Part shown: positions 1 through 22,910 of the stretch, one piece after another
Position numbering within the stretch: position 1 is the stretch's first letter
Layout of the letters: each line of letters opens with the position of its first letter
Source of the DNA: Macrostomum lignano
Taxonomy: Eukaryota
DNA length: 58,012 bases
NCBI GenBank assembly: GCA_002269645.1
Contig: NIVC01000207.1
Span: 1-58,012 of the forward strand
Reading direction: 5' to 3'
Program-made: the position numbers and the translations under genes
The notes under the pieces: generated by a model
The model's input: the letters and a program-made list of their open reading frames with translations, nothing else
Told to the model about the DNA's origin: nothing
Database searches by the model: none

Positions 1-160
1 GCGGCGGCGGCTTCTGGTTCCAGCCAGTGCCTCAGACTGCAACCCGAACGGCCCGTATTCGGCCACCAACAGGACCGGCGAGGAGGAGTTCATGGCCTGC
101 CTGCACGTGAAGAACTGGATGTCGCTGCTAGAGATTCGAATGATGCTGAGCACCGATTGA
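1..160 (+). CDS. 3' end (last exon, partial) of a fibrinogen-related domain (FReD; ficolin/angiopoietin-like) gene
   Basis: Joining three frames across two extra C bases (about nt 21 and 31) gives GGGFWF-SQC-SDCNPNGPYSATNRTGEEEFMACLHVKNWMSLLEIRMMLSTD* (TGA 158-160). This matches the fibrinogen C-terminal consensus GGWWY..C...NLNG.Y....W.SL...RMM. The 5' part lies outside the window. Confidence 0.6.
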   Translation, partial: RRRLLVPASASDCNPNGPYSATNRTGEEEFMACLHVKNWMSLLEIRMMLSTD

Positions 161-559
161 GCAAGGAGGACAACTCAATTAGAGTACTCAAGTAACATAA
201 AGGATACTACGAGATAGCAATAATTTTATCTATCCATAGTGCTGCTAGTCTAGTGGGAGCGCAGTCTTGCAAGTTAAGCAGGGTTGGCTGCGGTTAGTAC
301 GCAATCGCAGCGGGTTAGGCGTACTTTTTATATTTTATATTTTTAACGAATCACAAAAGCGTAAGCCAGTCAAGCGTTCCGTACATTTATGTCAAGAATA
401 TGCCAGCTCTTTAAAAAGTACAATTAATTAAAACTAGTTTTTACGTCAATATTTAACTTATTCAACTTAACTAAATATCGCCAAGTGTCCACGAGTCCAC
501 GCTTACGTGTAATTGCTTAAAAATACTTGTCAAATAATGAAATTAAAATCAAATAATGC

Positions 560-1520
560 GAAAGCGCGTTCTGGAAATGAAGATTACCGATGGCCTTCTT
601 GTGTCAGGACACAAGCCAGGTGCCCCTTGATGTGTCCGTTGTCAACGTGACCTCCTCTTGTGAGTAAGGTTGCACTACAGGTCTCATGGAGATTTACTTT
701 TTAAAGATTGAGTACAGTCCTCCGACCAGATTAAGGGGGTGGCTTGCCTAGACGGTTTAATATGGCGCACCTTTGGATGAAAATTCAGGAACGAAGCGTC
801 CAAAAATTGAACAGCCCCAAAAACTTCTCGACCTCGCTTTTCGAACTCGGAAGGGGGTGGATATATGACGGATCTTTTCCATCAGCTTGTCATCGGGCGA
901 TCCCAGCCGCCGAAAATTTTGAAGCCAAGGAAAGCACTCGTAATCTCGTCGAATGCACTGTTTTAACTGCCGCTGACCTTTCTTCTCTGCATTCAGTCTC
1001 GTCTCAACACCGAGGTCAGTCGCTTACAAAGAGCGAGTCGGCATTCTCAGCAAAAAGAAGAACATCATCCTGATAAATAAATTTTCCTTTTAGATTGGCC
1101 AGGATGCTCTCCATCGCCCTTGAATATAAATAAACCATTTTCATGCCCATCTATCTGCAGTTGCTAAACTCGGTTGAATCCGCGTGGGTGTTGCTGTTTG
1201 AAATCTCCTGTGCGTCCTCCTCAAAAGCAATTTTCAAGTAAGCCAATCTTTAGGTCTACCTTTTTTTCAAACTTCTTAGCGTTCTTATAAGCTTGGCAAA
1301 CAGATGCTCAGTAGATGGAATGGGGTACGACTCCAACTTTATCTTTGCATTTACATGGTTGACCATGCAATAGTCCGCGCATATCCTGAGCGAACTATCG
1401 GATTTCTTAAGCCCATAGGCGTAGGAACGGGAGGGAGGACAGTGGGGCCATGGGCCCCACATTTCTAATCGTTCCTACGCTTATGCTTAAGCCCTACACC
1501 ACGGGAGAATGAAGCGTTAG
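560..1520 (-). mobile_element. Degenerate Ty3/Gypsy pol fragment (reverse transcriptase to RNase H)
   Basis: Minus-strand pieces in RT-RNaseH order, with stops and frameshifts: LKKSDSSLRICADY..VNAKIKLESYPIPSTEHLFAKL; FQRAMESILANLKGKFIYQDDVLLF (YxDD at about 1064-1075); FLGFKISAAG; EVEKFLGL; VTLTTDTS..LACVLTQEGH. Confidence 0.85.
1414..1485. mobile_element. 72-bp hAT-like MITE inserted in the Gypsy RT remnant
   Basis: 16-bp TIRs cataggcgtaggaacg / cgttcctacgcttatg (1 mismatch); identical 8-bp flanking duplication cttaagcc (1406-1413 and 1486-1493); internal hairpin tggggcc-atg-ggcccca. Confidence 0.8.
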
Positions 1521-2168
1521 TTACCGGTCCTTCCATGGCTCAATGAGTTTAATGAGTCTTAATCTAAAAGTTACGTCAATATACTCCAGTCGTCCGTGAC
1601 TAGACATCTCGATTCTAATTATCAAAATAACCAAAAACAGACACAGTGCCAAAATATGTTTGATGCAATTCAAAAAAACTGTAAATACGAGTATATCAAG
1701 CAAGAGATTCAAAGCCAGTTTTATTTCCTCTGGATAAAAAAGAATAGAATAAAAATCTATCACTATTGCGCAACTAAGCTACAAAACACCAAATCCAAGG
1801 CCACAGTGTAAGCTGGTACAGTAAGCTATATATAGAGTGAAAAAAATGCAGCAGCCAAAACGGGTGCCGTAAGATCAACAGCTTCACCAAAACTAACTCA
1901 ATGCAGGAGGAAAACTAACAAAATAGAATAAGCAGATTTGACAAGTCAACAAAATTCAATGCTGTAGAATTAACATTTACCCTAATAGGACGCACTAAAA
2001 TTAACAGTGGTCTTTATAAAAAAAACATTTATTGGAAATGTTCTGTGTTTGTCCAAGGTGCGTCATATTAAGGTAATGAACTTATAAAAAATTGGTCCAT
2101 CCTATAGGAAATTATACATGTACTATTACACTGGCCAGCTGCACGGATGAATTGAGTGACTGTCAAGC

Positions 2169-4412
2169 CTAAAGCTCGTTTCTCCTCCTCCTTTTATCCT
2201 TGTCCGACATCTCGTCGATACTCATCTGAAGTTGAACTTTATCAGCTACTCGCTTGCAGCCGGTGCTGGAGAAGAACTTCTCCCGCTCAGGCACGAATAC
2301 CAGTTTGTTCAGCACCGCTCGATGAAGTCCGATCCGTACAGCCAGTCAGGATAGTGGAGTTTCAGGTAGTCCTTGATGCACTCGGTCACGTGGAGTCGCT
2401 CCAGCGGTAGGAATGGGATGAAACGGGACACCAGGTGATGTTTAAGTAGGGCGCTTTTGCGGAGAGGGCCTGCAGCAATCATAGTGCATCAATGAGCTAA
2501 AGTTATATTTGAATCACTTCGTGTCCCTGTTGCTGAGGTTATGGGGCTTCGAAAATGGGGCTCATGTGGCCCGATATGCATGATGTTCACGGTAATGATT
2601 GATTATTAGTAGATGAAAAACAGAACGCACCATTGCTTTCGTCATAAAGATACAATGGCAGTTTGTCGTCAAGTTTGCTGTAAACTTCCGAGCGATCTTT
2701 GCCCAGCTTTTTCTGGGCAAGCATGTACCGAGAAATCATATCACTTCCACTGTTGCTGAAATTATTCATAGGCTAAATTTATTAGGAATTAAATTGCACG
2801 AGAAATTAAAGCAAATTTATATTTGAAACTGAAGTCCCACCTTAGAAAGATGAATATCGCTCTGCGATAATCCACTCGGTCAATATGCTGGTAAGAGTCA
2901 ACAAATGGCTTAAGCGCGTCGAGCAGTGTGGCGGGCATTTTGTCAACTTCATCGAACACGAACACAGATTTTGGGCAGATCGATACGTTGCCACGAACCC
3001 AGGCTTGGATCTGGTCCTATTTTGCATTATTAATTTGCCGATAATAAAGCCTTGGTGAAAGCAAAAACTTTGTTTATGAAATAAAAAAATATGATTAGTA
3101 ATTTACTGACTAACCAACCTTATAAGTTTGCACTTGGTTTTTATGCGGAAAGTGCACAGTGCCCGAGAACAGATGATAAAACTTGCTTTTTGAATCTTTT
3201 ATAAATAGATGCCTAATAAGAATGCCAGACACATAGTTTTTCCCTGTGCCAGGTGGGCCATGCATGGATAGCAGCAAAGCTTTGGCAGGTTGATTGTTGC
3301 TCCAATGCTGTTGAACTGCATTTGACAGACCAATCAGTGGCTGGCCATAGACTCGTTCCTTTAGGGCATTGTTGAAGCCTGATTGATAATTGAAAATATT
3401 GGTTACTTGTTTTAAATAAGATATCTTAGTTTCTAAAAATGATATTTATTATGTATAAAAATCTTATCTATTTCTATAATTTCATTGATTCCCATTTTCT
3501 TTTCTAGTTTAAAATAGTTTACAGCCTAATTTTTTTAAATCAAGACCTATATTTGGGGAAGATATTATTACAAGCTAAATTAAAATAGCTTAGGCCAATA
3601 ATTTACACTTATGAACATATACATATTATATATGCACAATCTAAATTTACCTAGCTAATGCAATACAGTAAGTTTTTTCCTCAAAAATGTGATATGCCTA
3701 TATCTATAAGGCTTTTTTGACTGTTTGGTTTTTTATATAAGACAGTTTCATTTTAATAAAATTTATAATACATAATACCTTATTAGTATATCAGTTGTGG
3801 CTGAGCTATCAGTTGCACATCTAGCTATTAGGGCAGGCATAATTGATTATTATTATTATATTTCTATATTATGATTATTATTAGTTCTATTTTATTGACT
3901 TTGGCTTTCTCTATATAAATGGGTATTACAAACTAGGCTTATGACTCTGACTCATTTAATTTATTACATAATTGTTCATTGATAAACTATAAATTCAATC
4001 AGTTTATTGAATATTTGTTAACTCCATTTTGAAGTGGATATTATTAGACTAGCTTGTGCAAATCTTCAAATGTTCAAATGACCTTAAGAAGAGGTCCTAG
4101 AAATTAATTTTTAAAGTACATGGCTTTTTTAAAAAGAGAGCAGATGTGGAGAGCTTTAACATTTACATACTTACCTTCTGCACTGAAATCTATCCAAGAT
4201 CCTGAGCATCTCTCAGGGAAAATTATATCAAAAAGCCAATTAAAAAATCCATTATTAAATGGCGCCTCGCCCACGGCCACAAAAAGAGTAGGGAAGGTAG
4301 CACTTGCAAAGAGATACTTGTTTACGCCCGCTATTGATTCAACATTTGAATAACAAAACAAATTCAGCAGTGCTAAAATAGAAGCCAATGGCAGCCTTAG
4401 ATAAATCCGCAT
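2169..4412 (-). CDS. TOR1A-like: Torsin family AAA+ ATPase, paralog A (about 366 aa after correcting a 1-nt frameshift in exon 5)
   Basis: Exons (minus): 4412-4175, 3378-3119, 3016-2841, 2755-2631, 2469-2169. All introns GT-AG, phases 1,0,2,1. Signal peptide, Walker [14 protein letters not shown] sequon, Walker [10 protein letters not shown], sensor-1 [14 protein letters not shown], sensor-2 STGCKRV, ends DKRRRRNEL*. Exon sum is 1100 nt, one short of a multiple of 3; the missing G is at about 2315. Confidence 0.92.
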
Positions 4413-5267
4413 TATCTCAACTCTAGGGAAACTTATTTTATAAACAGGAAAATCAGAAATTATACGATTGTAAATTAGGATTCACTTTACAATATTTTAA
4501 AACATTTCGCGTTGTAATTTGTTCGACGACAAACCACAGGACAGGCGTGGATGGAAGCCTTGAGTCTAAATAAGTCTATATTAAAAAATTCAATTTAGCG
4601 AATTTTCGGTTTTCGATTCTATCGAATATAATTTTCCTCAGTACTTATTCTTGAATGTCTCTTTTGTTTGAATTTTTTTATTTTAGTGTAAATGCTTGTG
4701 TTGCATCTTACGTGTATTCTTTGTTTCTTTGTTGAAACGTTACCACTGATACGTACAAAAACATCGGAATTTTTGTCTTTTATCAAAAGTTGATCCTTTT
4801 TGTACAAAAGAGTCGATAAAAACTTTGCTTCCTTAGACAATCTTTATATCACAGACAGGCAGACACAAAGACAGACAGAAAGAAACTAAAACAGACTGAC
4901 TGATAGACAGACAGTTTGCATGGGTTATTGGTGGCGGATTAACCCAATCTCTGCATGGGCGGATGACCATCTTACAGGAGTGGGAGGCCATCCATGCAGC
5001 GCATAAAGTGATTTATATCTATACACCAGTCAAGCGAGGGGCGAGGGACTGACCAATCGATAGCAACGTAAATGATTGGGGGACGGCCGGTGGGTTAGGG
5101 CGGCAGGTACGGTGAGCACACAACAAAATACATTTGCAAGTCTATCACTGAAATCTCGATCTCTATTAGCAAAGAAAGAAAAATCAAGAGGGGAATTAAA
5201 ATCATTTGCTCGAATGAATTATCGCTTTCGAAACATTGTACATTAGGCATTTGCGAAAACTCAAAAG

Positions 5268-5320
5268 CAGGGACAACTAAAACACTTTAGTTATGTTTTA
5301 AAGTGTTTTAGTTGTCCCTG
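5268..5320. mobile_element. 53-bp hAT-like MITE
   Basis: Perfect 22-bp TIRs cagggacaactaaaacacttta / taaagtgttttagttgtccctg around a 9-bp core; identical 8-bp flanking duplication ctcaaaag (5260-5267 and 5321-5328); CAGGG terminus typical of hAT. Confidence 0.85.
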
Positions 5321-5559
5321 CTCAAAAGTATTTCTTTAAAAAATACAAAAAATATTTTTCAATATTTTTGAGACAATTATATAAAAAATGAACAACGAAA
5401 TTCGATTTAAACACGAAATAAATAAATTTTTTTATATTTTTCTAAGCAACAAAGTCAGCCGATTAACCCTATATAAGCTTTGCATTGAAAATTCATGTAC
5501 ATGTAAAAGCTTAGTCCTTGAAAACAAACAAAAGTCACCGTTCGTATCATTCACACGTC

Positions 5560-6100
5560 ATACATGTATCTGCTTGCCCTTGATGGCCCTAGCAGAGCGG
5601 CGCAGTGGCTCTTCAGGCTCCACAAGATCTGATTGCCGCCAACTCATCGCTGGCTGGAGCCGCCTGGCCGCCGCCAGTTGGACGTCTTCGGCTTCATTAG
5701 TGGACTCAGCAGTGGTCGACGTGCTGATGAAATTTGAAGGTTTGGCAAGGCTGCACTGAGGCGCAGTGCTGATTGGCGCACAGGGGTGCATTGAATACAC
5801 TGGCGCTTATGGGAAAAATCCGACCTTCTGGCAGAATCTTTGAATATCTCGATGGTCCGGAGGGCTGGCGACTTGATTCTTGTTTGAGAAGGTGCGCAAC
5901 AAAAAGTTAACTCGTGTTCTTGAATTTCGTGTGCCTGCGCCTGCAATACTGTATAAATGTGTAGAGCGAAAAACAAACTGACTGTCCGGGCAATGACAGA
6001 CTGAGACGATTGTCTCGTGCTCCGTTTTGCAATTTACAATTGTCCGAAAAGTGATCGAGAACTGTCATTTCAGAGCGAAAAAACTGCATGAAACCTTTTC
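5560..6100 (-). mobile_element. Probable decayed retroelement remnant (Gypsy pol C-terminal-like), partly repeated at 12360-12440
   Basis: Broken minus-strand pieces such as PSGPSRYSKILPEGRIF and EPEEPLRRSARAIKG resemble Gypsy integrase C-terminal tails. About 80 bp (5700-5790) recurs with high identity at about 12360-12440. Confidence 0.35.
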
Positions 6101-6137
6101 TAATGTTGCTCTAGTGCTTACCTCAAATTAGCGCCAG

Positions 6138-6622
6138 CAGGCACTCATTTTGTGGCCACACCCAGGCACTCATTTTGTGACCACACCCAGGCACTCATTT
6201 TGTGGCCACACCCAGGCACTCATTTTGTGGCCACACCCAGGCACTCATTTTGTGGCCACACCCAGGCACTCATTTTGTGGCCACACCCAGGCACTCATTT
6301 GTGGCCACACCCAGGCACTCATTTTGTGGCCACACCCAGGCACTCATTTGTGGCCACACCCAGGCACTCATTTTGTGGCCACACCCAGGCACTCATTTTG
6401 TGGTTACACCCAGGCACTCATTTTGTGGCCACACCCAGGCACTCATTTTGTGGCCACACCCAGGCACTCATTTTGTGGCCACACCCAGGCACTCATTTTG
6501 TGGCCACACCCAGGCACTCATTTTGTGGCCACATCCAGGCACTTATTTTGTGGCCATCCAGGCACTCATTTGTGGCCATCCAGGCACTCATTTTGTGACC
6601 ACATCCAGGCACTCATTTTGGC
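6138..6622. repeat. 25-bp minisatellite (caggcactcattttgtggccacacc), about 19 copies
   Basis: Direct periodicity of 25; explains ORFs 6150-6828. Confidence 0.97.
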
Positions 6623-6659
6623 ACCGCAGGCGCTATGCATGTATATTGGTGCCTGTAGT

Positions 6660-7320
6660 AAGTAAACTCAGACGGTTAGCGCGAGGTGGAAAAATAGTAC
6701 GGCCCTCACAAGAGCCCGCAACCAGTGAATATGCTTTTATATTCGGGATGCAGCACCCCTCCGATTCATTCATTGGCGGACACTTTAAACCAGAGAATTA
6801 TCGAGACACTTTAAATCGAGATGGCTGACACGCTGAAGCAGACCGCGTACTGGCCGGGACTACCAAACCTTCCAACCGAAGAAAATTTAGCATTCAGAAG
6901 ATTCAGATTCAGCTCGAAGAGACGGTATATTGATTGACGTGCAGAAGGTACCGCCATCAGACCGAGGAAACAGCTGCTTGCTGGCGGTGCAGAACCAGTT
7001 CTCCAAGTTCCTGACAGCTGTTCAATCCCAGACCAGACCGCTAAGACAGCTGCAGTAGCGGCCTTGAAGGCATTCTCCCTGTTAGGAGTTCCGTTGGTCA
7101 TCCACTTGGATCAGGGCTCTTCCAAGAGACGCCGCGAGCGCAGGGGCACCAGGAAGACCCGCATCACGCCCTACCATCCCCAAGAAAACGGCCTGGGATA
7201 GTGCGGCAACAAGTCGCTGCTGCAGCTGCTGAGGCTGTTCACCGAGACTGAGTCCAGCTTGAAGGAGCAGCTGTCGTTGGTGGTCCTGTCCTATAACTCC
7301 AGGGTCCACACAGCTCAACT
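6660..7320 (+). mobile_element. Degenerate Ty3/Gypsy integrase core fragment
   Basis: Plus-strand pieces LLGVPLVIHLDQG and GTRKTRITPYHPQENG..NKSLLQLLRL..LSLVVLSYNSRVH match the rve integrase consensus (GVP..IHSDQG; RTTPYHPQ.NG..ER.NRTL; AYN...H); interrupted by stops. Confidence 0.8.
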
Positions 7321-7803
7321 TAGGTTGCGCTCCCTTTGCTCATTTTCACTAATGAATAGATTGATTACTGCCCTGCAAGAACGTCGTACTTTGATCTCAC
7401 GCTGCCATTTGTAAGAAATATTATATTTTCAGCCAGAATCTGTTGTTTGTTAAAATTGATTGCACTTATTTAAGAGGAAATCCATGATTCGAGCTCGTAC
7501 CACCATGTATTTTTCAATTATCGACCATTGGCAACATTGACAACCGACTACCAAGATCATAACTTAAAGGAGTCGGCAAGTTAAAGGTATATGTAATCAA
7601 TAATTGTGCAGGTAGAAACCAACGACTACTCATGTTGTTATTGCTATTTCGATATTTTTCGATATTTTTCGATTTTTCGATATTTCGATTGCTTTCGATA
7701 GGAGGCAGTGTTGATCCTAAGATGTACATGTCCTGTGCCTAAAAACCATAGAAATGGCACGGCACGGCTCGGATCATTTGTTTTATGAATATTTTTATTA
7801 TTA

Positions 7804-8385
7804 TCCCATGCTTCAGATTGGGGAATCCCATGCTTCAGATTGGGGAATCCCATGTTTCAGATAGGTGAATCCCATGTTTCAGATAGGGGAATCCCATGTT
7901 TCAGATAGGGAATCCCATGCTTTAGATAGGGGAATCCCATGCTTAAGATAGGGGAATCCCATGCTTGAGATAAGGGAATCCCATGCTTAAGATAGGGAAT
8001 CCCATGCTCAAGATAGGGGGGATTCTTAAGATAGGGGAATCCCATGCTTCAGATAGGGGAATCCCATGCTTGAGATGAGGGAATCCCATGCTTGAGATAG
8101 GGGAGTACCATGCTTAAGATAGGGGAATCCCATGCTTGAGATAGGGGAATATCATGCTTGAGATAGGGGAATACCATGCTTTAGATAGGGGGATCCCATG
8201 CTTAAGATAGGGAATCCCATGCTTTAGATAGGGGAATCCCATGCTTTAGATAGGGGGATCCCATGCTTGAGATAGGGGAATCCCATGCTTGAAATAGGGG
8301 AATCCCATGCTTAAGATAGGGAATCCCATGCTTGAGATAGGGAAATCCCATGCTTTAGATAGGGGGATCCCATGCTTAAGATAAA
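7804..8385. repeat. About 21-bp minisatellite (cccatgcttgagataggggaat-like), about 28 copies
   Basis: Visible 20-21-bp periodicity, just downstream of the torsin B stop codon. Confidence 0.95.
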
Positions 8386-8454
8386 CTTGAGTTTCCACCT
8401 TATAGTTCCAAGTTTAGCGCTCAAAGTTTTTAACTCAATAAAAATACTGCGTAG

Positions 8455-8834
8455 CTAAATAGCTTTCCTCTTTGATTTTGTTCTCGACATGTCCGCATCT
8501 CCGCTCTTCTCTCTGTCTGCTTCATTGTCCAACATGCTCTGCACGAACTGTGCCTTGCTGATGACCATCTTGCAGCCTGACTCGGAGAAGAATCGCTCAT
8601 TCTCCGGCTTGAATCGAAGCTGCTTCAGCACCCGATCGATAAACAGCTGCCGACGCTGCGCGGCCAGGTAGTTGGGCTGGCTGGCTCGCAGGTAGTCCTC
8701 TATGCAGCCGGTCACGTGCTCCCGCTCCAGCGGCAGGAACGGGACATAGTGCGACACCAGGTTCTGCTGGAAGACGGCGCTGTCACGCACGGAGCCTGTG
8801 GTGGTATAGTGATGTGTGTGTGTGTGTGTGTGTG

Positions 8835-8865
<31 letters not shown>

Positions 8866-11048
8866 GTGTCTTAGTGTCTATGTGTCTTAGTGTCTGTCCG
8901 TCTTAGTGTCTGTCTGTCATAGTGTCTGTCTGTCATAGTGTCTGTCTGTCTGTCTTAGTGTCTGTCTATCAATCTACCAATAACAAGCAGAGCTGAGCTC
9001 ACTCTGTGTATGCAGGTACTTGATCAGCTGATTTTTCAAACTGAAGTTGCTGTAAGCATCGCCTCGGTTTCGATTCAGCCTCTTCTGCTCCAGCATGTGC
9101 TGCTCGATGGCGCTGCTGCCTTCGTTGCTGCAATTCGGGTTATAAAATCTGGGTCAAAGTTGATTCTCAGCCTACTACTTAAAGTAGTTAACAGCAGAGT
9201 CACAGCAGTTTCTCACAAGAGAAATATGAAAATTGCGCTGCGAAAATCCAATGCGTGGAACACCTGGTCGGTCTCGTGGTAGTCGAGTAGCGGTTGCAGC
9301 GAGTCAAGAAGCCTGAAGGGCATTTTGTCAACCTCGTCGAACACGAACACCGACCTGGGGCAGCGGGTCACATTGCCCCGGATCCAGGAATGAAGTCGGT
9401 TCTGACAAGTTCCATAGGGTGTGAGATTGTTTATAAGTTTGCATATATACTTGTATACAAGCTTTAATATGTGTAATAGAGTACGTTATAATTACTATGA
9501 TTATTTGGCTTACGTAGTTGATACTTTAAATAAGTCACGTCACGTAAAGCGGATGTCTTAGGGGAGCGTAGCCCAGTGGTCCAGCTCTTATTGGTCCAGC
9601 TCTTATTGGTCCAGCTCTTATTGGTCCAGCTCTTATTGGTCCAGCTCTTTTTGGTCCAGCTCTTTTTGGTCCAGCTCTTATTGGTCCAGCTCTTATTGGT
9701 CCAGCTCTTATTGGTCCAGCTCTTATTGGTCCAGCTCTTATTGGTCCAGCTCTTATTGGTCCAGCTCTTATTGGTCACTTTCTTAGTCAACATTAATTTG
9801 GGGCTAAATTGGAATCTCGGCTTGGGTCTGCTTATGCAATTAACGCCCTTAAGGGCACCCACCTCCAAGGTACAGGGTGTACATGCCTGATGATTAGAAA
9901 GTCAGGGCCTGTGCCTGAATGCATAAGTATCTACGTGCTTGTGTGATTGCTCAGGGGAGTCAGTGGAGCCTGCTCAGGGGCACTAATGCCTATCGCCGGT
10001 TGTGTGACAATGTCGCTTAAACCTGCCCACATGCTCCCTGCATCTAAAAATATAAGATATCCTCATAGGTTATATTTATTCTGAAAATTGTTTCTGGATA
10101 ATGTCTGGTCTGCTGTAGCCCCACATTTGCCTCATAGGCCACTTAACAAGTAAATATTCTAGATACAATACAACAAGTTCTAAGAAATTGAAAAATAACT
10201 TGTGCTAGCTGCTATCTGCATCATGTTAGCCTATCACTCTAGTTGATTTTTTCATAAAAAAATAAGTTTACCAACCATATAATTGAGCAGCTGACTGCTC
10301 TGGTGGAAGTGCAAAGTTGCTGGGTACAAGTGGTAGAACTGGCTTCTTGTTCCTTCTTTGTATAAATGATTTGCCATGATCTGGCATACATAGTTTTTGC
10401 CAGTGCCTGTGGGGCCATGCATTGATATCACAAGAGCTTTGGCTGCCTGACTATCATTCCAATGTTGCTGGATGGCCTCTGCTAGCCCAGTTAATGGTTG
10501 TCCATACACTCTGTTGACCAAGGCTTCTTTAAAACCTAGGAAAGAAAAAAAACTCCTTTAAATAAAAAAATTCATACTAATTATAAACAATTTTTGTTAT
10601 GCATGTTTAATTCTTTTTTATTTTAATCGAACAAAACTAAAAGTTGTGTTTAACACTTTATCAGCAAATGAACAAATAATAGAAATTAATGTATTGATTT
10701 TTAGCTATCTTAATTAGCCATACCTCCTGCAGTTTTTAAAGCTATATTATATTTAGGAATATTTTGTATTATATATTTGATAAATTAACAAAAAATAACT
10801 ACAAAGTAAATATTAGGCCTACCTGTGAAATTAAAATCAACCCATGGACTTGTGCAGGTTTCATAATCCTCACTTGAACTGTAAGAAAATTGAGCACTTC
10901 CAAAAGCAAAACAAATAGACAAAAACAATGAGGTCTTAACAATAGTAGAATATTGGGTGCTTTTGCAAGAAATTTTTCTCGATTTTCCGAAATTAAGAAC
11001 TGCATTAAATATACTAAAACTAATGAAACTCGTGAACGAAGTTTGCAT
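8455..11048 (-). CDS. TOR1A-like: Torsin family AAA+ ATPase, paralog B (378 aa)
   Basis: Exons (minus): 11048-10823, 10535-10276, 9401-9217, 9127-9003, 8795-8455; sum 1137 nt, open frame, GT-AG. Walker A HGPTGTGKN, GNVT, Walker [10 protein letters not shown], sensor-1 region FIFLFN, YVPFLPLE, ESGCKMV, basic tail RTKSKRKAI*. Confidence 0.93.
8812..8970. repeat. (GT)n/(GTCT)n compound microsatellite in torsin B intron 4
   Basis: Seen directly. Confidence 0.9.
9577..9776. repeat. 15-bp minisatellite (ggtccagctcttatt), about 13 copies, in torsin B intron 2
   Basis: Direct periodicity of 15; explains ORFs 9464-9890. Confidence 0.97.
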
Positions 11049-13345
11049 TTCGTTGCCTGATGCTATTTATTTGAAAACGACTTTGAGTTCGAACGAGAAA
11101 GAAATCTCTTAATTTGATATGATCATATTGTCTGCTATTCACAAAAGCTTTAACCTTTGCTTGAGAAACTACCAAAACAGAGTTACAGAAATTAAACCTA
11201 ACCTAATTACACCAAATTTAATTATTAATTTAATTTAGAGAAAATGAAAACGAGGTACCAAGTTAAAATTTGACGCCGCGGTGATTACTAACAAAACAGA
11301 AAATGTAACAAAGATAAATTAAAAGATTTCATAACGTTAATACAATCAAATTTAAGAACTTTCAAAAACTTTTTAAGTTTTTTATGAACAATTATTATGT
11401 GGACCTGAAAAATTTAGGACGGAATAATGGGTGCAAAGCGCCTTCAAAAGGGCCGTTCGGAATGGGATGAAATTAACTCGGGCTCGGGAAAATTAAAAAA
11501 ATTAAAATAATGAAAAAAAACTCTCTATTTGTCAAGATTCTATGTCAAAATAAAAAATTCACTTTTTACGTTGCATGATGTACTATACTACCCCGATAAA
11601 CTGAGTACTGCGTGTGACATGTGTATGCATGTTTATCAGGTATGCACATAAATATAAAACATGCATTTTCAATAAGTCAATAATGCTTGCTTCTGATTAT
11701 TTCCGTTCCAGCACTCTAACTCGATGTCACATATCAATTACGCGTTTGCTTATTGATTGACTATAGTGGCCGGTTTAAAAATTCAGAATGTATAAAACGT
11801 ACACTATACTCCTCGAGCAAATGTTTGTAGAAAATTTTTTCCAAAATTAGGAGAGGAACAATAATAATTGTGCACACCCATGCGGAATCGAAAACGTTTT
11901 GCAAAGTGATACATTTAATATTATATGAATTAATTGAGAACATGCGTACATGATAGAAATGGTCGTGCAGGATGCTGATCTGACACAAATAAAACAGATC
12001 AGGATCGAAAGTGGCTAGAGAATGCACAACAGGTCGATGTTCATGTCATATGGTCGTCGTCACCCTGATGCCATTTATTGAAGGTACCGAAGGCGTCGGC
12101 TGGTGATCATGATGGAATGCTTGAAACTACGAGACATATGTACGTACATGTATAGGTTGAGGATGTTCAGCAGCTGAAAAATACTCATTAATAATACTAT
12201 AGGCTTGATCAGCGTAACTAGAGAAATTCGCGATTCGCAGGTGCCTATATATTTTACAGTACTCACCTGGTGCCACCTGTTGAAGGTCCACCAGAAACTG
12301 GCCGCCTGGGGGGGGAGGCAGCAGGCATGGTCGCCGAAGTCAGAGCTCTGATCATGCAGACACATGTGGTCGACGTGCTGATGAAAATTGGAGGCTTGGC
12401 AAGGTCGCACTGAGGCGCAGTGCTGATTGGCGCACTGGGGTGAATTCCCGTACAACAAAATTGTATATCCAATTACATGAAAGTATATCCCTGCAATGGA
12501 AAGTTAGGTATCCAATACGGATCCCTTTAGGTTGTATGAACGTCCCTGAGGCGTGTCGAATTCATTTATGATCTTTCAAGTGGCTCTACAAAAATGATGA
12601 ATAAATAGTGAATTATAATAGAAGCATTATTTATTCAGAACCATTTTTAGAACCACTTGTAGATATTAGCCAAACGTACGTGTGACGCGACCCTTCTTGT
12701 TCGGTGCTGACGGCTATGCACTTATCAATAAATGAGTCTACGTAGCAAGAAAGTTTAGAATTTTAACTTCGACTGATTGTATTTAACCGTATTATATTAT
12801 TTATTTGAAGACAGGAGTTAACTGTTGCTGTTAAATTATTGGTAGTAAGTACTAAGTATGGCGAATAGGCACAACGCGGCGGACAAACCAACAGCACACA
12901 CGAGCCCAGCGAGACAAGAACACTAGAGAACAAAAATGCGATATAACCCACTTTTAAATAATGCAATACCCGTATTTCTATGAATGATACAGTAAGACAA
13001 ATTTTATGTATAAATATAGAATAAATTTAAGATTCGTTTAATAAATAGTAGTTAGATTAATAATATAATACTAAAAGGGCATTAATAACACTAGAATATT
13101 TTCAGAAATAAATAGCTCGTATCAACATCGTTACATACGCTCATATTAAAAATACGTTTAAGTCATAAGGAACGAGCTAAATTCCAGTAACTCTGTTTGC
13201 ACACGAAATTTTAACACATGAAAAAAATGACACAAAAATTATTTATCCACTAGCATTTGTATTTCTTTGGATAGATAGATTAGTTTGCTCCGAATATTAT
13301 TAAAAGAAAAGTCAGCACCCTCACCGTGAGTGATTAACAGTAATA

Positions 13346-14294
13346 TAGCATTTTGCAGTCAAGCCCGAACTGCGGGCATTCAAATTAGACGCTTGACCAG
13401 ATCTCACTGCTGGCACAAATGCTATCTATGGCCTAGACAAAATCACACTGGTGGGCACTCAATTCAGACAAGGGGCATTCAAATTAGACAAGTTCTCAGG
13501 CGCATTGGCTGGGCAATTCAAGATCGTGTTGCGTCTGTTGTCAGACAACCATTCTGTGAACCCTGAACTATGAAGATAAGAACAAGTTATAACAAAGTAA
13601 GCATGTGTGACCAGGCAAGTCGTGACCGACAAATCCACGAGCCAGTTGGCGAATTCAACGCGTCTTTGCTTGACCTCATGCGAATTTCTCGCTTCAGGTA
13701 CATCGCCATCTCTTGACAGGATTTTCATCGAAAAAAGTTGTCCATCCAGTGCTCGAGAGACTGTTGAAATGTCAATCGTTGGTATTGCGGGAAACTCAGA
13801 CAGAAGCGATTCCCGCATTTGCCCGAGTGTCATCAGAGGGTTGGCATTCAACAAGGCGGCCAGATGGTCCTTCATTGCAGGATTCATTCGACGGTGCCTG
13901 GCTCCTCCCCTTGGTAGCGCGTATCGCTGGCCATCCTGAACAAACTTGTTCCAGATGTTGTACACTGATGATCTCTTGACATCCAACATGTTGGCAATTT
14001 CAGCCACAGAGTCACCACGTTGGCATGCCCCAATAATGAGGTCACGCTTCTCTCTGGAAATTCTTGCATAGCGACGAATCGGATTGTCCATGGTCTTTCT
14101 CTCTGGCACACATAGACTTTCCGCTGCTTGTCTAATTTGAATGCCCGTTGTCTAAATTGAGTGCCCGTCAGTGTGTTTCAGTTTGTGCCACAGACATAAA
14201 GTTCTGCTTGACTTGGGGACGGATTCTGAAATTTGGCTCTTCCCTTCTTGTCTAATTTGAATGCCCGCAGCTCAAACTTGACTGCAAAATGCTA
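13346..14294 (-). mobile_element. Internally deleted Tc1/mariner-IS630 superfamily transposon (949 bp) with a DNA-binding-domain-only ORF
   Basis: TIRs tagcattttgcagtcaag...ctgcgggcattcaaattagac at both ends; TA flanks (13344-45, 14295-96); repeated ggcattcaaattagac motifs inside both ends. ORF 14109-13459 encodes paired-like HTHs (SVAEIANMLDVKRSSVYNIW; TLGQMRESL..IDISTVSRAL) and RNSHEVKQRRVEFANWL, then runs into the left terminal repeats with no DDE/D triad. Confidence 0.9.
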
Positions 14295-14632
14295 TAATAA
14301 AAAGTAGAATGCAAAAAACAAGATAAAAACGTCTTTGTTCGACTCGAATATTTTTATTGAATTGACTTGATACGTATTGCCACACAATTGGACATCTTCA
14401 GGCGATACACTGATCACATTTAATTTATCACGAAAAATTGCATTATCTTGAAGCATTTCAGCGTCCTATGACTTAATTGTACACATCAATTGTCTAGTTA
14501 CTTTTGGAGATAATCTAAAGAATAATCAAAAGCTAAACAAGCATTAGCCAGCTAGAATCGACAATAATTTCTCAATTTACAATCGTAGTGTTAATTAAGT
14601 AACAATACACTTCAAAGCTACTGATTAAACGA

Positions 14633-17600
14633 TCACAGATATAATTTCTCTTTCTTTCGCGCCTCTCGCTTTCGCTTGAGGTCGATTCGCTCCCGCTCCA
14701 GAATGAACTGCGTCTTTTCGATGACCCGCTTGCAGCCGGAGGAGGCGAAGTAGCGCTCGACTTTGGGCTGAAAATCAATGTCGGCCAGCACGCGGTCGAT
14801 GAAGCAGGTCGGGATCAGATAGTCTGGCTGATTATCCAGCAGGTAGTCATCTATACAGCCGGCCACGTGATCTTTCTCGAGAGGCAGGAGCGGAATGAAT
14901 TGCGACACCAGGCTGTGGTAGAGTAAAGCGCCTGGTTGCTGGCTGCCTGCGGTTCGCAGAGCGGACTCGAGTTACTGAGTTTTCTTGTTTATTTTGCCCT
15001 CAAAGGGACGTTACCTTAAACCCGTGCAGCAATCCGACGTCAGCGTCAATGGATGTCTCTGGCAAATGGGTGGTTTTAACAATTCAACAACGTTTCAGCC
15101 GACGTATGACGTCGTTATCCGTCGGTAGATTGCAAACTTACCCAATTTACAGCGACATCCATCGTCGATTAGGTGGAGAGAGGCTGACATCCTCTTTATA
15201 GCTTTACAGTTATCTATTCTATTTCTGCTAAGAAATTTCCACGGTTTTGTTTTCGATTCATGCAGGAATTTACATTGTGAACTTCTATGGGGATTCTCCA
15301 TTTGTAAATTTTGATAGTTTTCATAGAGATACTTCAATCGTGAGGTATTTTTCGGTTTTGTAGAAGTTTAACTTAAAACACAGTGGAGAAAAGAATTCGT
15401 ACGTTTGGCCTCGGATTCAAGGTGCTTGGATAGCAGGTTGTCAAAATCTGTGTAGATATCGTAGCGTTTGCGTCCCAGTCGCTTCTGCTCGACCATGTGG
15501 CTCATTATCAGGTCGCTACCGTCGTTTCTGAAAAATACAAAAAAGTATAACAAACTCAGAATATCTATCTGGATTTTATTTGTTTCAAATGCAGCTACCA
15601 CGACCATCAGATTCTGTTGCAAATTAGGACTTTCTAGAAATTTTTCATATCTACAGGACGGCCTTATAAAATTTTTCGCTCGAATTTACCGAAGAAAGAT
15701 GAAGATGGCCCGGCGATAGTCGACTCCGCCGATGTGGTCGTTGTGGTCTAAGAAAGGTTTGAGGGCGTCGAGCAGCGCCAGGCCGTGCGGGATCTTGTCG
15801 AATTCGTCAAAGACGAACATGGACTTCGAGCAACGGGACACGTTGCCCCGCACCCACTCTTGGAGCTCGCTCTGGGAAATACGAGAGTGGGAGATGTCTG
15901 GCCAGATTGCTCAATTTAAGCCACTTAAAATAGCTTATAAACTACGAGTAGACCATGAAGTCGGTCTAGAAGTAAAACTCTAGGGGCGATTTACGGATCT
16001 GGGAGAGCGTCGGCAACCCAGGAACTGAGAATTTGGGAGGACGATTGTTGCTCAGCAAGTGAAAATTTGGGAGGTCGGCAGCGGCCCGGCAACTGAAGAA
16101 CTGAAGGGCGATGGTTGCTCAGAAACTAAGGATCTGGAAGGGCGGCAGTGGCCCAGCAACTGAAGATCTTGGAGGGTGGCGGTAGCCAACCCAGCAACTG
16201 ATAGGATCTCAGAGAGCGTCTGCAACCCAGCAACTGATAGGATCTGAGAGAGCGTCTGCAACTCAGCAACTGATAGGATCTCAGAGAGCGTCTGCAACCC
16301 AGCAACTGATAGGATCTCAGAGAGCGTCTGCAACCCAGCAACTGATAGGATCTGAGAGAGCGTCTGCAACCCAGCAACTGAAGATCTGAGAGAGCGTCTG
16401 CAACCCAGCAACTGAAGATCTCAGAGAGCGTCTGCAACCCAGCAACTGAGGATCTGAGAGAGCGTTGGTATCCCAGCAATTGAGGATCTGAAAGGTCGGC
16501 AGTGGCCAGGCAACTGAAGATTTGGGAGGTCCAGCAACTGAGAATCCTGGAGAGCAATGGTTTGAATTGAGAATCCAAGCCGATGCTGAGTGCAGCAGAG
16601 ATTCTGACAGATTAGAAGAAAATCAAAAGGCTTGCTAAGAAAACCAACCATGTATGTTTCCAACCGACTCTTATGAGGGAAATGCACAGCGGCATGAAAT
16701 AGTCGGTAGAAGTTGCTTTTGGTGCCCCTTGTGTACAGATGATTCGCCAGAATTTTGGCCACATAGTTCTTGCCAGTGCCTGTAGGGCCATGCAGAGACA
16801 GCACGAGAGCTTTGGCTGACTGCTTGTCATTCCAGTGGTGCCAGACAGCATTTGCGAGACCAACCAATGGCTGTCCATAAACTTTGGTGTCAAGAGCCAC
16901 TTTGAATCCTGTAGTAAAACAAAATATTGCAGTGATACTAAATTAAGAATACTATCATATTATAAACTGGCAAAAGTTACTTTTAAAATTCAAATTATTA
17001 TTTCTAATGAGTATTTATTAAAATCAATCACTAGCAAGGTTTTCATTTCTAAAGTTGCAATAATTCTCTAACATTAATTCAATATAGAAACTCTGGCAAT
17101 TGTTTTTTTCAATAAGACTTCAAAGTATATGCAATTTTTATGCATATAAGACAAAATTGACTAAAACAGAAAAAACTATATTTTTGTTATTATGCTTCTA
17201 TTAAAAATTTATTGGATCTTCTGTTGAGAATGTTACATTCAAAATAATGTTGAGAATTTAGCCCTCTTTGTCTATAGATTTTTACTTATAAAAATGAATA
17301 TAAAACCAATAAAGTATCTGCTATTGAAATTCTAAAGATAAAGTAATATATATATATTTAAAAATGGTGCATTTTTTCATACAACTTAGCTCTTCTGAAT
17401 TCAAGATATTCACAGACAGGCCTGTATGTAATATAAATTTTCTTAGCATAAAAAACACAAAGTATGGTGTTAACTTTTAACAAATTTTTAGTGCCCAAAG
17501 TAAATTTAAAGTATTTAAATAGTCACCTGTGTGATTGAAACTTATCCACATGGAGTCACAAATTTCTTCATCGTCGAGTGAACTGTATAATTGCCCAAGA

Positions 17601-17674
17601 GTGAGAAATATTAAAAATGATGCTATAATTGAATTTGAAAAGCATAAAAACGTTAAGGAGTAAATAACCTTCAT
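14633..17674 (-). CDS. TOR1A-like: Torsin family AAA+ ATPase, paralog C (about 342 aa)
   Basis: Exons (minus): 17674-17527, 16908-16649, 15871-15690, 15527-15403, 14946-14633; sum 1029 nt, open frame. An alternative in-frame exon-5 acceptor at 14931 is possible. Walker A HGPTGTGKN, GNVS, Walker B FVFDEFDKI, FIFLRN, FIPLLPLE, SSGCKRV, tail KRKREARKKEKLYL*. Confidence 0.93.
16000..16555. repeat. 36-bp minisatellite (cccagcaactgataggatctcagagagcgtctgcaa) with degenerate flanks, in torsin C intron 2
   Basis: Direct periodicity of 36; the core is shared with the 28-bp repeat at 39060-39555. Confidence 0.93.
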
Positions 17675-18655
17675 CTTCGATTAAAAATGAGAGCAAGGAT
17701 CACTTCTACGGTTGGACAGTTTAAGCTTATGTAAGTAAATACAACTAAGAAACTCCAAAAATATTGTATCTAATTACTAATACTAATACATTAAATTAGT
17801 TTCAAGGTTCTAAGTTAAAGTCGTACGCATTATATCGATATATGTTGAGAATAACAAAACTTAGTATCCATTATGCATGCGTTGCGTCAAATGCGATTTT
17901 GGGCTCTTAAATCTCGTGTAATGCATTTCAAATAAATTGAAATTTGTTAATAATGATATTATTAATTGCTATTAGTTATTGACGAATTAATTTTACTTCT
18001 TCATGTACATATATTAACCAGCATCCTGTCATACCGTATTTGGCGAAAATTTTGGTTCGTTAGATATGCGTGCCTGCCGGATAGGTAATATTAAGGCACG
18101 GCTCTGTGAAACCCCATAACCGTGTTATAAAAGACATAAGCACCTGCGAGTGAAAGCATCCACAGTACTAAGTTCAGAAGCACTTGAACATATTTCTGTA
18201 CAACCTGTGCTATGTTAAATTTTGATATAACTCTTTTACACATGTAAGCCCATTAATTTTCTGGCCAATGAACGTTTGGTTAAAACAAAGTTTCAACCAA
18301 AATTGCAACCCAACCCAAACCCAGCTCATAAAACAAATGAAAAAAGAATAAAAGCTTTTAAAATGAACAGAGAACCCAAATAAGTTTCTTACTTTTCTTT
18401 ATAAACGTTATTGATTTAGGTATAATCTATTTTGGGACTGCATACAGAAACGCTAGTCGCTGTTTCTATAAAGCAGTGTATTTAATTTGCGGCTTTGTAC
18501 AACACAACAACGCTGGGTCGCATTTGGGTTAACAAAATAATAAGATTTACACGCAAATTAGTTTTTGAAAACCGGGAAAAATAACTGAATAACCACACCG
18601 TATTATAAAGCACAAGTAATTATCAAAGCTGAAACAATATCAATAGCAAAGAGCC

Positions 18656-19292
18656 TCAGGAATCGTTTAAAACCATGAGAGTCTTATCGACAATACGCTT
18701 GCAACCGGCGCTTGAAAAGAATCGTTCATCATTTGGCACAAAGGGCAGCTCGTTCAGCACCCGGTCGACCAGGTCTTTCTCGCCCGTATGAGCAGGTTGA
18801 CTGGCTTTCAGGTAGTCCTTGATGCAGCCGATCACGTGATCTCGCTCCAGCGGCAGGAACGGGATGAAGCGTGACACCAGGTGATGCTGGAGTAGGGCGC
18901 TGGAACGCAGCGCACCTGCGGACACAATTAAAGTAAACAAAGTCCAGGTCAAACACAATCATTTTTCAAGCGTAAATTCGAAGGCCTTTTCAGATCAGAA
19001 GGCTTCTACTAGCTCAACGATTCGGAGCTGGATATAATCGCGATTCTACGTAACGAAAAATGAATCAAAAAAACTTACTACTATTATCAGAGTAGACATG
19101 CTCGGACAGCAGGTGGTCGAACTTGGCCATATTAGACGTGTCAGAACGGTCGTGACCGGATCGCTTCAGTTCAACCATGCGGCGCATGATGAGCTCGCTA
19201 CCGCTGTTGCTGCGGCCGGGAGCAGTAAATTTGGTTGTTTGATTGATAGATGGATAGATGGACAGATAGATGGATAGATAGATAGATGATAG

Positions 19293-19329
<37 letters not shown>

Positions 19330-19334
19330 GATAG

Positions 19335-19371
<37 letters not shown>

Positions 19372-19401
19372 GATAGAAGATAGATAGATAGATAGATAGA
19401 T

Positions 19402-19440
<39 letters not shown>

Positions 19441-19445
19441 GATAG

Positions 19446-19538
<93 letters not shown>

Positions 19539-19539
19539 T

Positions 19540-19622
<83 letters not shown>

Positions 19623-22600
19623 GGATAGATGGATGTATAGATATTACAGATAGATAGAGTTACATAGCTAGAAGTATTACCTGAGAAAGATAAAGATGGC
19701 CCGCCGATAGTCAATGCCATTGATGTGCTCATGATAATCAACAAAAGGTTTGAGCACGTCAAGCAGCGAGTGCGGCATCTTGTCAATCTCGTCGAATACA
19801 AACACGGACTTGCCGCAGAGAGACACGTTGCCCCGGACCCATTCGTGTATCTGGTCCTGGCGGCGTATTTAGGATAAACAATTGAAGGTCAAAAATACCG
19901 ACTTATTTAATTGTAAAACTGTAATCTAGCTGTAGTTCTGTAGTTCTGTTCTACATGCAACACTTAATTTTGACGAATTTTATTCTTATATACCGCTGTT
20001 TTAATTCGATCATAAACTAGAACCAGCACTGTTATTCTATAAACTACCACTCTATCATAGGTCATATGCTATCATTCTACTATAGATGATGGGCTACCAT
20101 TCTACCATAAGTCAAAGACTACCATTCTATCATAGGTCATAGACTGCCATTCTATCATAGGTCATAGACTGCCATTCTATCATAGGTCATAGACTGCCAT
20201 TCTATCATAGGTCATAGACTGCCATTCTATCATAGGTCATAGACTGCCATTCTATCATAGGTCATAGACTTCCATTCTATCATAGGTCATAGACTGCCAT
20301 TCTATCATACGTCATAGACTGCCATTCTATCATAGGTCATAGACTGCCATTCTATCATAGGTCATAGACTGCCATTCTATCATACGTCATAGACTGCCAT
20401 TCTATCATACGTCATAGACTGCCATTCTATCATAGGTCATAGACTGCCATTCTATCATAGGTCATAGACTGCCATTCTATCATAGGTCATAGACTGCCAT
20501 TCTATCATAGGTCATAGACTGCCATTCTATCATAGGTCATAGACTGCCATTCTATCATAGGTCATAGACTGCCATTTCATCATAGGTCATAGACTGCCAT
20601 TCCATCATAGGTCATAGACTGCCATTCTATCATAGGTCATAGACTCCCAGTCTATCATAGGTCATAGACTCTTATTCTCTCATCGTTTAGAATCTAATGC
20701 TAATAAGTTCTGCATCAATTCTAGCACTGACATGAACTCTACTAAAAGAGTTGAAACCGAATCAAACCAACCGCGTAAGTGTCCAGCAGCCTCGAGTGAG
20801 GAAAATGCACTGTAGCCGAGAACAAATGAAAATATCGACTCCGACCGCCGCGCTTGAACAGGTGATCGGCCAGGATGCGCACTGCGTAATTCTTTCCCGT
20901 GCCAGTGGGCCCGTGCAGTGACAGCACCAGAGCCTTGGCCGGGTGCCTGTTGTTCCAATGCTCCTGGACGGCCTCGGACAGGCGGCCAATCAGTGGCTGG
21001 CCATAGACTTTGGCGGCCAGAGCCTCTTTGAATCCTTCATGGTTGAGGGGACATGGGGGGAGTAGGTTTGGGTGGCAGCTTGACTGTAGGTCAATCAGCA
21101 AAATAGACTATCTTATCAAGTTATTCACAAAGTCACAAAAAATCTGTAAAAATGCCTGTTTTGTCACGCATAAGGGCAATATAAAACTAGCTAGAATATG
21201 GTCAATTATCCATAAAAAAATTGCTACAATTAAATACTGCTATTATACTATTTTATATACACTGGGAAGTTCAAAGTGGGAAGCTCTTTTCAGCTGGGGA
21301 AAATTTATATTTATGATACTTATTTTGCAATATTGGTTTGCAACTGTACTGGGGAAAGGGGTGTAGCTTGGGGGGGGGGGGGTCAGTGCTGCACCATACC
21401 TGCGCATTGAAGGGTTTCTAGCGCTTGGTCTTTCAGGGGGAGGGGGCTCCTTGTGCTAGGTTGGCATGAGCTCACTCTTCTGGTTCTCATTCATGTATGA
21501 TTTTTTGTGTTTCTGTGGGGTCTTCAGTTGGGTTTTTTTCTGCTCTTTTGTTAGCAATGTCTCAATAGTTAGAGTGTGGCTGGAAGGTGAATGCCTGTGG
21601 GGGCAAACATGGATAGACTTCCTGAGAGCAACAAAGCAAACTAAAGATAGTTGAGTCAAGAGCCTTTTGAGAACAACTTCATTATGACAATTGATCTTTT
21701 TTTAAAATGAAAAGTTCTAATATATCTTCAATTGCTTAAATTTTTATAAAATGACTGCTGGTGCTGACATTGCATTTTTTTCTCTTTTTGACTAATTATA
21801 CTACTTATATCTTTGGACAGAATATTTATTTTTTGCTTTTATGCAATGAAACTTTGCATGTAATGGCACATACAAAAAAATTTGGTAAATAGCTATGGTT
21901 AAAATGGATTTGGAAATAAAAACATAGGTTTAGATTTGGCTAGACCATGGAAATTTGTAATTGGTAGCCTAATGTCTTAATTTAAATTGTTTTTTGATTA
22001 CTTTAGTAACAACATTTATAAAAAATAATTGTAATCTAATATTTTTTAACTTTGCAGCAAAATAAAAGACAAAAAAGTAACCCGATTGGTATAAAAAATG
22101 AATTTAATTTGTTTAAACAATCTTCGCTACTTTTATTTAACAAGGTGCTAAAAAATACAAGCATATTTTTGCTTTCAATTGTTTTTATTGTCTTGTATAT
22201 AGCGCACAATGCAGATGAAACTCTTGGCATGTAGGTGCACATGAGATTTTTTAATAATCTTTGCATGCAGTAGTCAGGTTCTAATATTTTTGTGGCATGC
22301 ATAGAACATCTTTGGGACTATGGTTAACATTAGTCTTTATAATAAGTTATAATAAATAAACCTTAAATTCTGAAAATATGTTATAGAATTTTACTTGCAT
22401 ATTATTATTTTTGCTTGTATTTTCTCTATATAGTTATTCCAATAACAAAATGGGTTTACTATTAAGTTAGGCCAATTGTGAAAATTATTTTTCATTTTAA
22501 ACTAAGATAGGCCTATTATAATGATATTAGGCTACAAAATTTAAACACATAGTTCAAAATTTTAATGCCTTAATTGTATCAAATTGTGTCATTAAAATAT

Positions 22601-22910
22601 TAGAATAGACAAATCTTAAAACAGGCCTATGCATAGACCAAGAGTGAGAATAAGTCAAATGAGGCCTAACATTAACAAGAGCAAGGTCTAGTTACCAACC
22701 TGTATGGTTGAAATCAACCCATTGTTTTCCACAACACTCTGCAAAATAGCAGCTTAATTGATCTTTATACACAAAGCTAACTGACAAGGCAATAGCAGAA
22801 AAAGCTGCGCTCGCTAAAGAAAGGGGATTCGCTTCCGCAGAGAAGATTTGATGCAATACAAGTAAAAACAGAGGCAACAAAACTTTGCCTCTGGCTGTGA
22901 AAAGCTTCAT
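18656..22910 (-). CDS. TOR1A-like: Torsin family AAA+ ATPase, paralog D (346 aa; most canonical, TorsinA/B-like)
   Basis: Exons (minus): 22910-22700, 21034-20772, 19856-19681, 19209-19079, 18915-18656; sum 1041 nt, open frame, GT-AG. Signal peptide plus hydrophobic NTD plus CYFAECC, Walker [44 protein letters not shown]. Orthology to vertebrate TOR1A is not established. Confidence 0.95.
19245..19640. repeat. (GATA)n microsatellite in torsin D intron 3
   Basis: Seen directly; explains the SIYL repeat ORF. Confidence 0.97.
20100..20670. repeat. 25-bp minisatellite (gccattctatcataggtcatagact), about 23 copies, in torsin D intron 2
   Basis: Direct periodicity of 25. Confidence 0.97.

Follow-up and report, generated by a model that had tools for sequence, protein, structure and literature searches.

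Introduction

Torsins are AAA+ ATPases of the lumen of the endoplasmic reticulum (ER) and of the perinuclear space. They have no arginine finger of their own, and their ATPase activity is switched on by a cofactor of the LAP1/LULL1 type. Work on the family has been driven mainly by DYT1 dystonia, and the substrates of torsins are still unclear. Here we describe four torsin genes of the flatworm Macrostomum lignano, located at positions 2169-22910 of contig NIVC01000207.1 of the Mlig_3_7 assembly (GCA_002269645.1); the whole of this contig, 58,012 nucleotides, is the window that was analysed. The genes all lie on the minus strand in head-to-tail order, with spacers of 981, 3584 and 4042 bp between neighbours, and are named T1, T2, T3 and T4, corresponding to A, B, C and D of a first-pass annotation made from the letters of the sequence. 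With a probability of about 0.8, we regard them as an old lineage-specific tandem array of four paralogous torsins derived from a TOR1-type ancestor.

Several torsin systems invite comparison with this array. The vertebrate genes TOR1A and TOR1B, which we take to be adjacent duplicates on human chromosome 9q34, resemble T4 in the design of the N-terminus and in the CxFxECC motif, and the five exons and their intron phases are common to T1-T4 and the TOR1A gene of Python. However, the vertebrate pair consists of two genes instead of four and is separated by a distance of only 0.34, compared with 0.54-0.79 in M. lignano, where the genes stand head-to-tail. In addition, three of the four M. lignano paralogs differ from TorsinA and TorsinB in lacking two N-terminal cysteines and in carrying charged C-terminal tails. 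Caenorhabditis elegans has three torsins, OOC-5, TOR-1 and TOR-2, of which TOR-1 is a possible pseudogene (PMC3580786, Table 1). This is likewise a lineage-specific multi-copy set in an invertebrate, but it arose by independent duplications, the nematode sequences fall outside the T1-T4 clade, and the Macrostomum genes form one contiguous array of four. In the sponge Oscarella lobularis, two torsin genes were found head-to-tail on the same strand, 87 bp apart, on two near-identical contigs (L008 1-1472 and L009 1-1472). Tandem duplication of torsins therefore recurs in animals, although the sponge pair is intronless (325 and 323 aa, with 972 bp for the 323 aa) and comprises two genes as against four intron-bearing ones. 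Drosophila Torsin and the other single-copy invertebrate torsins belong to the same family and have the same catalytic motifs, but these are single genes without diversification into paralogs. A literature search on Macrostomum together with torsin found nothing, and one on torsin duplication in invertebrates returned irrelevant papers only; a preprint of 2025 about how torsins are distributed offered nothing usable on subfamilies.

Results

Gene models and their agreement with the deposited annotation

The gene models were built from the minus-strand translation of positions 2000-23200. Gene T4 (18656-22910) encodes 346 aa in exons 22910-22700, 21034-20772, 19856-19681, 19209-19079 and 18915-18656. 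It is followed by T3 (14633-17674; BOX15_Mlig030646g1), encoding 342 aa in exons 17674-17527, 16908-16649, 15871-15690, 15527-15403 and 14946-14633, and by T2 (8455-11048), encoding 378 aa in exons 11048-10823, 10535-10276, 9401-9217, 9127-9003 and 8795-8455. The last gene, T1 (2169-4412), gives a conceptual protein of 366 aa from exons 4412-4175, 3378-3119, 3016-2841, 2755-2631 and 2469-2169. All 16 introns have GT-AG borders and the phases are 1,0,2,1 in each gene, so that the first-pass description of four head-to-tail five-exon torsin genes with these phases agrees with the models. Reading frames of T2, T3 and T4 are intact in the window. We infer exon 1 of T2 from the conserved C..PWVDFNFTG motif and from the sole ATG downstream of an upstream stop. 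The core protein identity among T1-T4 was 52-62%, and no similarity was detected by blastn (word 11, E<=1e-3) among the introns of different paralogs, which bears out the earlier statement that the proteins are diverged and the introns cannot be aligned.

The Mlig_3_7 assembly, a Canu build from PacBio reads with Pilon polishing, has known redundancy, and its GenBank annotation comes entirely from RNA-seq transcript assemblies (PMC5730564). The torsin genes of the array are already annotated there from transcripts, under the product names 'hypothetical protein' or 'AAA+ ATPase domain-containing protein'. For T3 and T4 the deposited models are exactly equal to the sequence-built ones in coordinates and length; for T2 the deposited model is a 5'-partial one of 292 aa, with the junctions of exons 2-5 placed as in ours. 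The transcript-derived annotation implies that the torsin genes have transcript support. A 280-aa T1 model deposited on contig NIVC01000008.1 (L002 6490-8315; P0029; BOX15_Mlig023009g1) comprises exons 1-4 and then 44 nt of intron 4, which could be due either to intron retention or to an incomplete transcript model.

Membership in the torsin family

Each of the four proteins matched the Pfam Torsin family (PF06309), with E-values of 2.6e-33 for T1, tested as the frame-corrected translation, 1.7e-32 for T2, 3e-37 for T3 and 5e-38 for T4; the scores of 112.7-130.5 bits compare with a gathering cut-off of 27. Residues 75-338 of T4 (264 residues) were aligned with the solved structures of human Torsin-1A (6OIF, 5J1S) at E = 7.5e-69. 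The C-terminal domain TOR1A_C (PF21376) scored 34.7 bits in T4, 26.6 in T2, 23.3 in T1 and 21.3 in T3, so that only T4 exceeded the cut-off of 27, and in T1-T3 the alignment spanned 54-57 of the 58 profile positions with scores below it.

The Walker A motif reads GPTGTGKN in T2-T4 and GPPGTGKN in T1, with the non-canonical GKN ending, and Walker B reads FDE[IVF]DK in all four. Over 12 aligned sequences the GKN of Walker A, the Asp-Glu of Walker B, sensor-1 N218, C291 and GCK 331-333 (T4 numbering) were invariant, C291 and the Cys of GCK being the pair equivalent to C280 and C319 of TorsinA, and so was the cysteine equivalent to C162. A hydropathy heuristic found an N-terminal hydrophobic segment in every paralog. 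An NV[ST] sequon equivalent to N158 of TorsinA, where it is glycosylated, is kept in all four and is consistent with a luminal location of the proteins.

Origin of the array

An exhaustive search with HMMER through 1.84 billion representatives yielded 266 torsin clusters at E<=1e-30. Neighbour-joining (NJ) trees were constructed over 271 core columns from T1-T4 and 145 other torsins, consisting of 50%-identity representatives and named hits. By database names, from which TOR2A and TOR3A were placed among the representatives, the set contained TOR1A/B, TOR2A (P0177, prosalusin), TOR3A (P0237, P0227) and a dipteran Torsin (P0182, Lucilia), together with sequences from nematodes, a trematode (Calicophoron), a monogenean (Cichlidogyrus), molluscs, an echinoderm, a rotifer and a sponge. 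All 200 of 200 bootstraps recovered the M. lignano genes as a monophyletic group, under Kimura and under gamma distances alike, and so did a single NJ tree on uncorrected p-distances. In a phylogeny of the kind that the first-pass annotation had proposed as a check, T1-T4 thus stood together, outside the named TOR1A/B, TOR2A, TOR3A, fly and nematode sequences. Distances within the clade were 0.54-0.79 and no outgroup came closer than 0.94, the nearest ones being P0121, P0124 and P0009; for comparison, TOR1A was 0.34 from TOR1B, 1.02 from TOR2A and 1.05 from TOR3A. In a search with a profile of T1-T4, the clusters of these four M. lignano proteins scored 468-604 bits and the next protein 329 bits. 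All four proteins also read VYGQP at a site that is L[YF]GQH in other torsins, and share a deletion directly behind it. Within the clade, T1 grouped with T4 at 57% support and T2 with T3 at 65%, and the order of branching was left undecided.

The best named matches of T1-T4 were torsin-1A/1B-like, and T4 was at a distance of 1.06 from TOR1A, 1.22 from TOR2A and 1.47 from TOR3A, in a set without an identified TOR4A and with deep NJ nodes that are not resolved. Between paralogs the proportion of synonymous differences (pS) was 0.63-0.73, which is saturated, and dN was 0.30-0.38, giving a nominal dN/dS of 0.11-0.28, that is, below 1 as the first-pass annotation had anticipated. The saturation of the synonymous sites argues that the duplication is old, and since T1-T4 form one clade among the 149 torsins, the expansion appears to be specific to the lineage leading to Macrostomum. 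The earlier proposal of an old tandem expansion is upheld by both the clade and the pS values. Judged from these ratios, all four paralogs evolved under constraint through most of their past.

The intron phases had also been put forward as a mark of this expansion, and this did not survive comparison with other animals. A torsin gene of Lymnaea stagnalis, mapped on its locus, has coding exons of 163, 266, 176, 128 and 296 nt, and TOR1A of Python bivittatus, mapped in the same way, has coding exons of 214, 266, 176, 128 and 251 nt, in both cases with phases 1,0,2,1. The internal exons of 266, 176 and 128 nt in these two animals compare with 260-263, 176-185 and 125-131 nt in T1-T4. Because the layout is the same in the Lymnaea torsin and in Python TOR1A, five exons with phases 1,0,2,1 are read as the ancestral, inherited arrangement, which is uninformative about the Macrostomum lineage. 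The identical phases in T1-T4 do indicate that the duplications occurred at the DNA level and not through retrocopies.

The frameshift in T1

The coding sequence of T1 as assembled in the window is 1100 nt long and not divisible by three. In exon 5, at 2309-2316 on the minus strand, GG stands at 2316-2315 for an expected GGG, and because of this 1-nt deletion the frame ends at a TGA (2311-2309) before it reaches the GCK codons (2261-2253), which are thus out of frame. The first-pass claim of intact Walker A, Walker B and GCK motifs in all four genes therefore holds for Walker A and B everywhere, but not for the GCK of T1 in the window. The two other assembled versions of the gene, on NIVC01000008.1 and NIVC01000094.1, both have GGG at this site. 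Alignment of the end of NIVC01000008.1 with window positions 1-10906 showed no substitutions and 24 indels, about one indel per 450 bp, and from this pattern the two stretches are taken to be one haplotype assembled twice, with the indels as assembly errors. Since the overlap differs by indels only and the other versions read GGG, the frameshift in T1 most likely arose as an indel error during assembly. Given the residual indels, single-base frameshifts in Mlig_3_7 are in general poor ground for calling open reading frames (ORFs) pseudogenes.

A second genomic copy and recent selection

A second full array with the same gene order is present on the 1.29-Mb contig NIVC01000094.1, and its exons are 98.4-100% identical to those of the window. 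Between the two copies, T1 differs by 1 synonymous and 5 nonsynonymous changes (one of them nonsense), T2 by 1 and 8, the latter lying mostly in exon 4 and the tail, T3 by 5 and 3, and T4 by 4 and 2. In T3 and T4 taken together, 5 of 14 changes were nonsynonymous (p = 0.001 against the neutral expectation), and these two genes are under purifying selection between the genomic copies. In T1 and T2 the corresponding number was 13 of 15 (p = 0.75), and the two pairs differ from each other (13 versus 2 against 5 versus 9; Fisher p = 0.008). This suggests, but does not prove, a recent relaxation of T1 and T2, which possibly follows a recent doubling of the locus. The nonsense change, W73*, converts TGG to TGA at the conserved Trp73 in the NIVC01000094.1 copy of T1 (L003 16651-16653) and looks like a real disabling mutation. 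The reading frame of T2 is intact in both copies and that of T1 in the NIVC01000008.1 version. In GenBank, the T1 model on NIVC01000094.1 begins further downstream, within exon 2.

Differences among the paralogs

By hydropathy, T4 has a signal-like segment at aa 8-25 and a second hydrophobic segment at aa 30-48; it contains the motif CYFAECCG with all three N-terminal cysteines (C..CC), as in TorsinA and TorsinB, and has no C-terminal tail. In T1, too, the N-terminus includes two hydrophobic segments; the protein has one of the three cysteines and a tail ending in RRRRNEL, of which RNEL fits the KDEL-like pattern [KRHQSA][DENQ]EL. A single N-terminal hydrophobic segment is found in T3, which retains one cysteine of the trio; its sensor-1 region reads FLRNDG, and its basic tail ends in RKKEKLYL. 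The most divergent paralog, T2, starts with a weakly hydrophobic stretch, after which comes a second hydrophobic segment. It too retains one cysteine of the trio, reads FLFNEG around sensor-1 and ends in a charged C-terminal tail of 30 aa. Charged C-terminal tails have thus been added in T1-T3. The residues at the positions of TorsinA E302 and E303 are NE in T4, AD in T3, KQ in T2 and NK in T1; acidic residues at these positions are gone in T1 and T2, while T3 keeps an Asp and T4 a Glu.

The first-pass annotation had proposed that D kept the ancestral design and that A-C specialised in targeting, redox state and cofactor interface. The TorsinA-like N-terminus of T4 and its C..CC trio agree with the former, but two hydrophobic segments are not unique to this gene, being found in T1 as well. 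The sequence differences fit the latter, but T1 and T2 have recently been changing as if neutral. The further suggestion of a 'remodelling system' is unsupported, and what the locus holds is an array of paralogs.

Discussion

The most likely history of the locus would begin with one ancestral TOR1-type gene having the ancestral bilaterian five-exon structure, and would require three duplications at the DNA level in the lineage leading to Macrostomum. Because both genomic copies hold all four genes in the same order, these duplications would long predate the recent duplication of the M. lignano genome. T4 would then be the canonical enzyme, carrying a signal peptide and a hydrophobic segment that associates with the membrane, retaining every one of the conserved cysteines, and acidic at the E303 position. 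T3, without the second hydrophobic segment and two of the N-terminal cysteines, would probably be a soluble or differently anchored luminal torsin. T1 and T2 keep every catalytic motif and would have been long constrained, with their recent substitutions neutral-looking and one copy of T1 disabled. From what is known of the family, each active paralog would be expected to bind ATP, to hydrolyse it only with a LAP1/LULL1-type cofactor that supplies the arginine finger, and to act on membranes of the ER and nuclear envelope or in nuclear pore biogenesis.

The alternative with the most in its favour is that the array is partly decaying, so that only T4 and T3 would be functional and T1, perhaps also T2, would be redundant and drifting to pseudogenes. 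The nonsynonymous and synonymous changes in T1 (5 versus 1, including W73*) and T2 (8 versus 1) together fit neutrality, T1 is frameshifted in the window as assembled, one annotated T1 transcript model runs into intron 4, and the TOR1A_C match is below the Pfam cut-off in T1, T2 and T3. However, the frameshift looks like an assembly error, the T2 frame is intact in both copies and that of T1 in NIVC01000008.1, the changes in T2 are concentrated in the variable exon 4 and C-terminal tail, and the apparent relaxation of both genes may just follow the recent doubling of the locus. Moreover, the catalytic motifs and cysteines have been kept despite saturated synonymous sites, with dN/dS of 0.11-0.28. 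We therefore consider decay a possibility that is clearly the weaker of the two, although not a negligible one. A more elaborate idea is that T1-T3 are more than redundant and are flatworm-specific subunits with altered cofactor surfaces, the acidic E302/E303 pair being gone in T1 and T2 and modified in T3, a basic or KDEL-like tail gained and the N-terminal cysteine trio no longer complete; they would co-assemble with T4 or use other activators. This seems to us unlikely; if true, these torsins would work as hetero-oligomers or with swapped cofactors, in a machinery that other animals are not known to have.

Two further explanations have much less room. The differing N-termini and C-terminal tails of T1-T4 could recall the vertebrate subfamilies, which from general knowledge differ likewise, and the four genes might then be orthologs of the ancient TOR1, TOR2, TOR3 and TOR4 that stand side by side by chance. 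This is very improbable, since none of the 145 other torsins, TOR2A (P0177) and TOR3A (P0237, P0227) among them, is as close to any of T1-T4 as the remaining three are, the clade is recovered in 200 of 200 replicates, and the within-clade distances of 0.54-0.79 are smaller than those between TOR1A and TOR2A (1.02) or TOR3A (1.05). Nor is there much reason to regard the four genes as an artefact made of redundant haplotigs or mis-joined copies of one gene. The assembly is indeed redundant (PMC5730564), and the left end of the window duplicates the end of NIVC01000008.1, but paralogs with only 52-62% protein identity and unalignable introns, found in the same order on the independent 1.29-Mb contig NIVC01000094.1, make such an origin scarcely credible. 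Assembly redundancy accounts only for the extra contig copies and is refuted as an explanation of the four paralogs.

Several points weigh against the reading of T1-T4 as an old lineage-specific tandem array with constrained members. The trees are distance-based and not maximum likelihood, and TOR4A was not identified in the set; there is no other macrostomid in the database, so that no bounds can be set on the age of the expansion; and the search covered the best 150 representatives, so that a further M. lignano torsin elsewhere could be missed. The contrast in selection is built on 29 substitutions only, expression is deduced from transcript-based annotation and not from inspected reads, and exon 1 of T2 is without transcript support in the GenBank annotation. 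With these reservations, the array is an ordinary lineage-specific expansion of a well-known enzyme in an already highly duplicated genome, and it leaves existing knowledge of torsins unchanged. Its value lies elsewhere, as M. lignano is a tractable, transgenesis-capable flatworm, and one canonical and three divergent paralogs provide it with natural torsin variants. These vary in the segment for membrane association, in their redox cysteines and at the cofactor interface, and could be used to dissect these features.

Other sequence in the window

The spacer between T3 and T2 contains an insertion of about 950 bp (13346-14293, minus strand), outside the torsin genes, that is absent from the NIVC01000094.1 copy, where L001 20612-20614 joins window positions 14294 and 13345. 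Within it, an ORF of 216 aa (13459-14109, minus strand) encodes a helix-turn-helix (HTH) region of the transposase type (Pfam HTH_32, HTH_29 and Sleeping Beauty HTH). Six mini- and microsatellite arrays, at 6138-6620, 7803-8383, 9577-9776, 16152-16491, 19241-19658 and 20039-20670, with units of 25, 22, 15, 36, 4 and 25 bp, respectively, are located in the T2-T1 spacer and in introns of T2, T3 and T4, and several of them yield long spurious ORFs; arrays of this kind are just as frequent elsewhere in the window. An ORF of 303 aa (36599-37510, minus strand), lying where the window is GC-rich, matches the C-terminal two-thirds of Pfam Pkinase (E = 1e-16) and has HCDLHPEN as its catalytic loop; it probably belongs, as one exon, to a neighbouring kinase gene. 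The last 13 kb are filled up to the contig end by a 118-bp satellite (44943-58006, about 111 copies at 99% match), which probably explains why the contig ends there.

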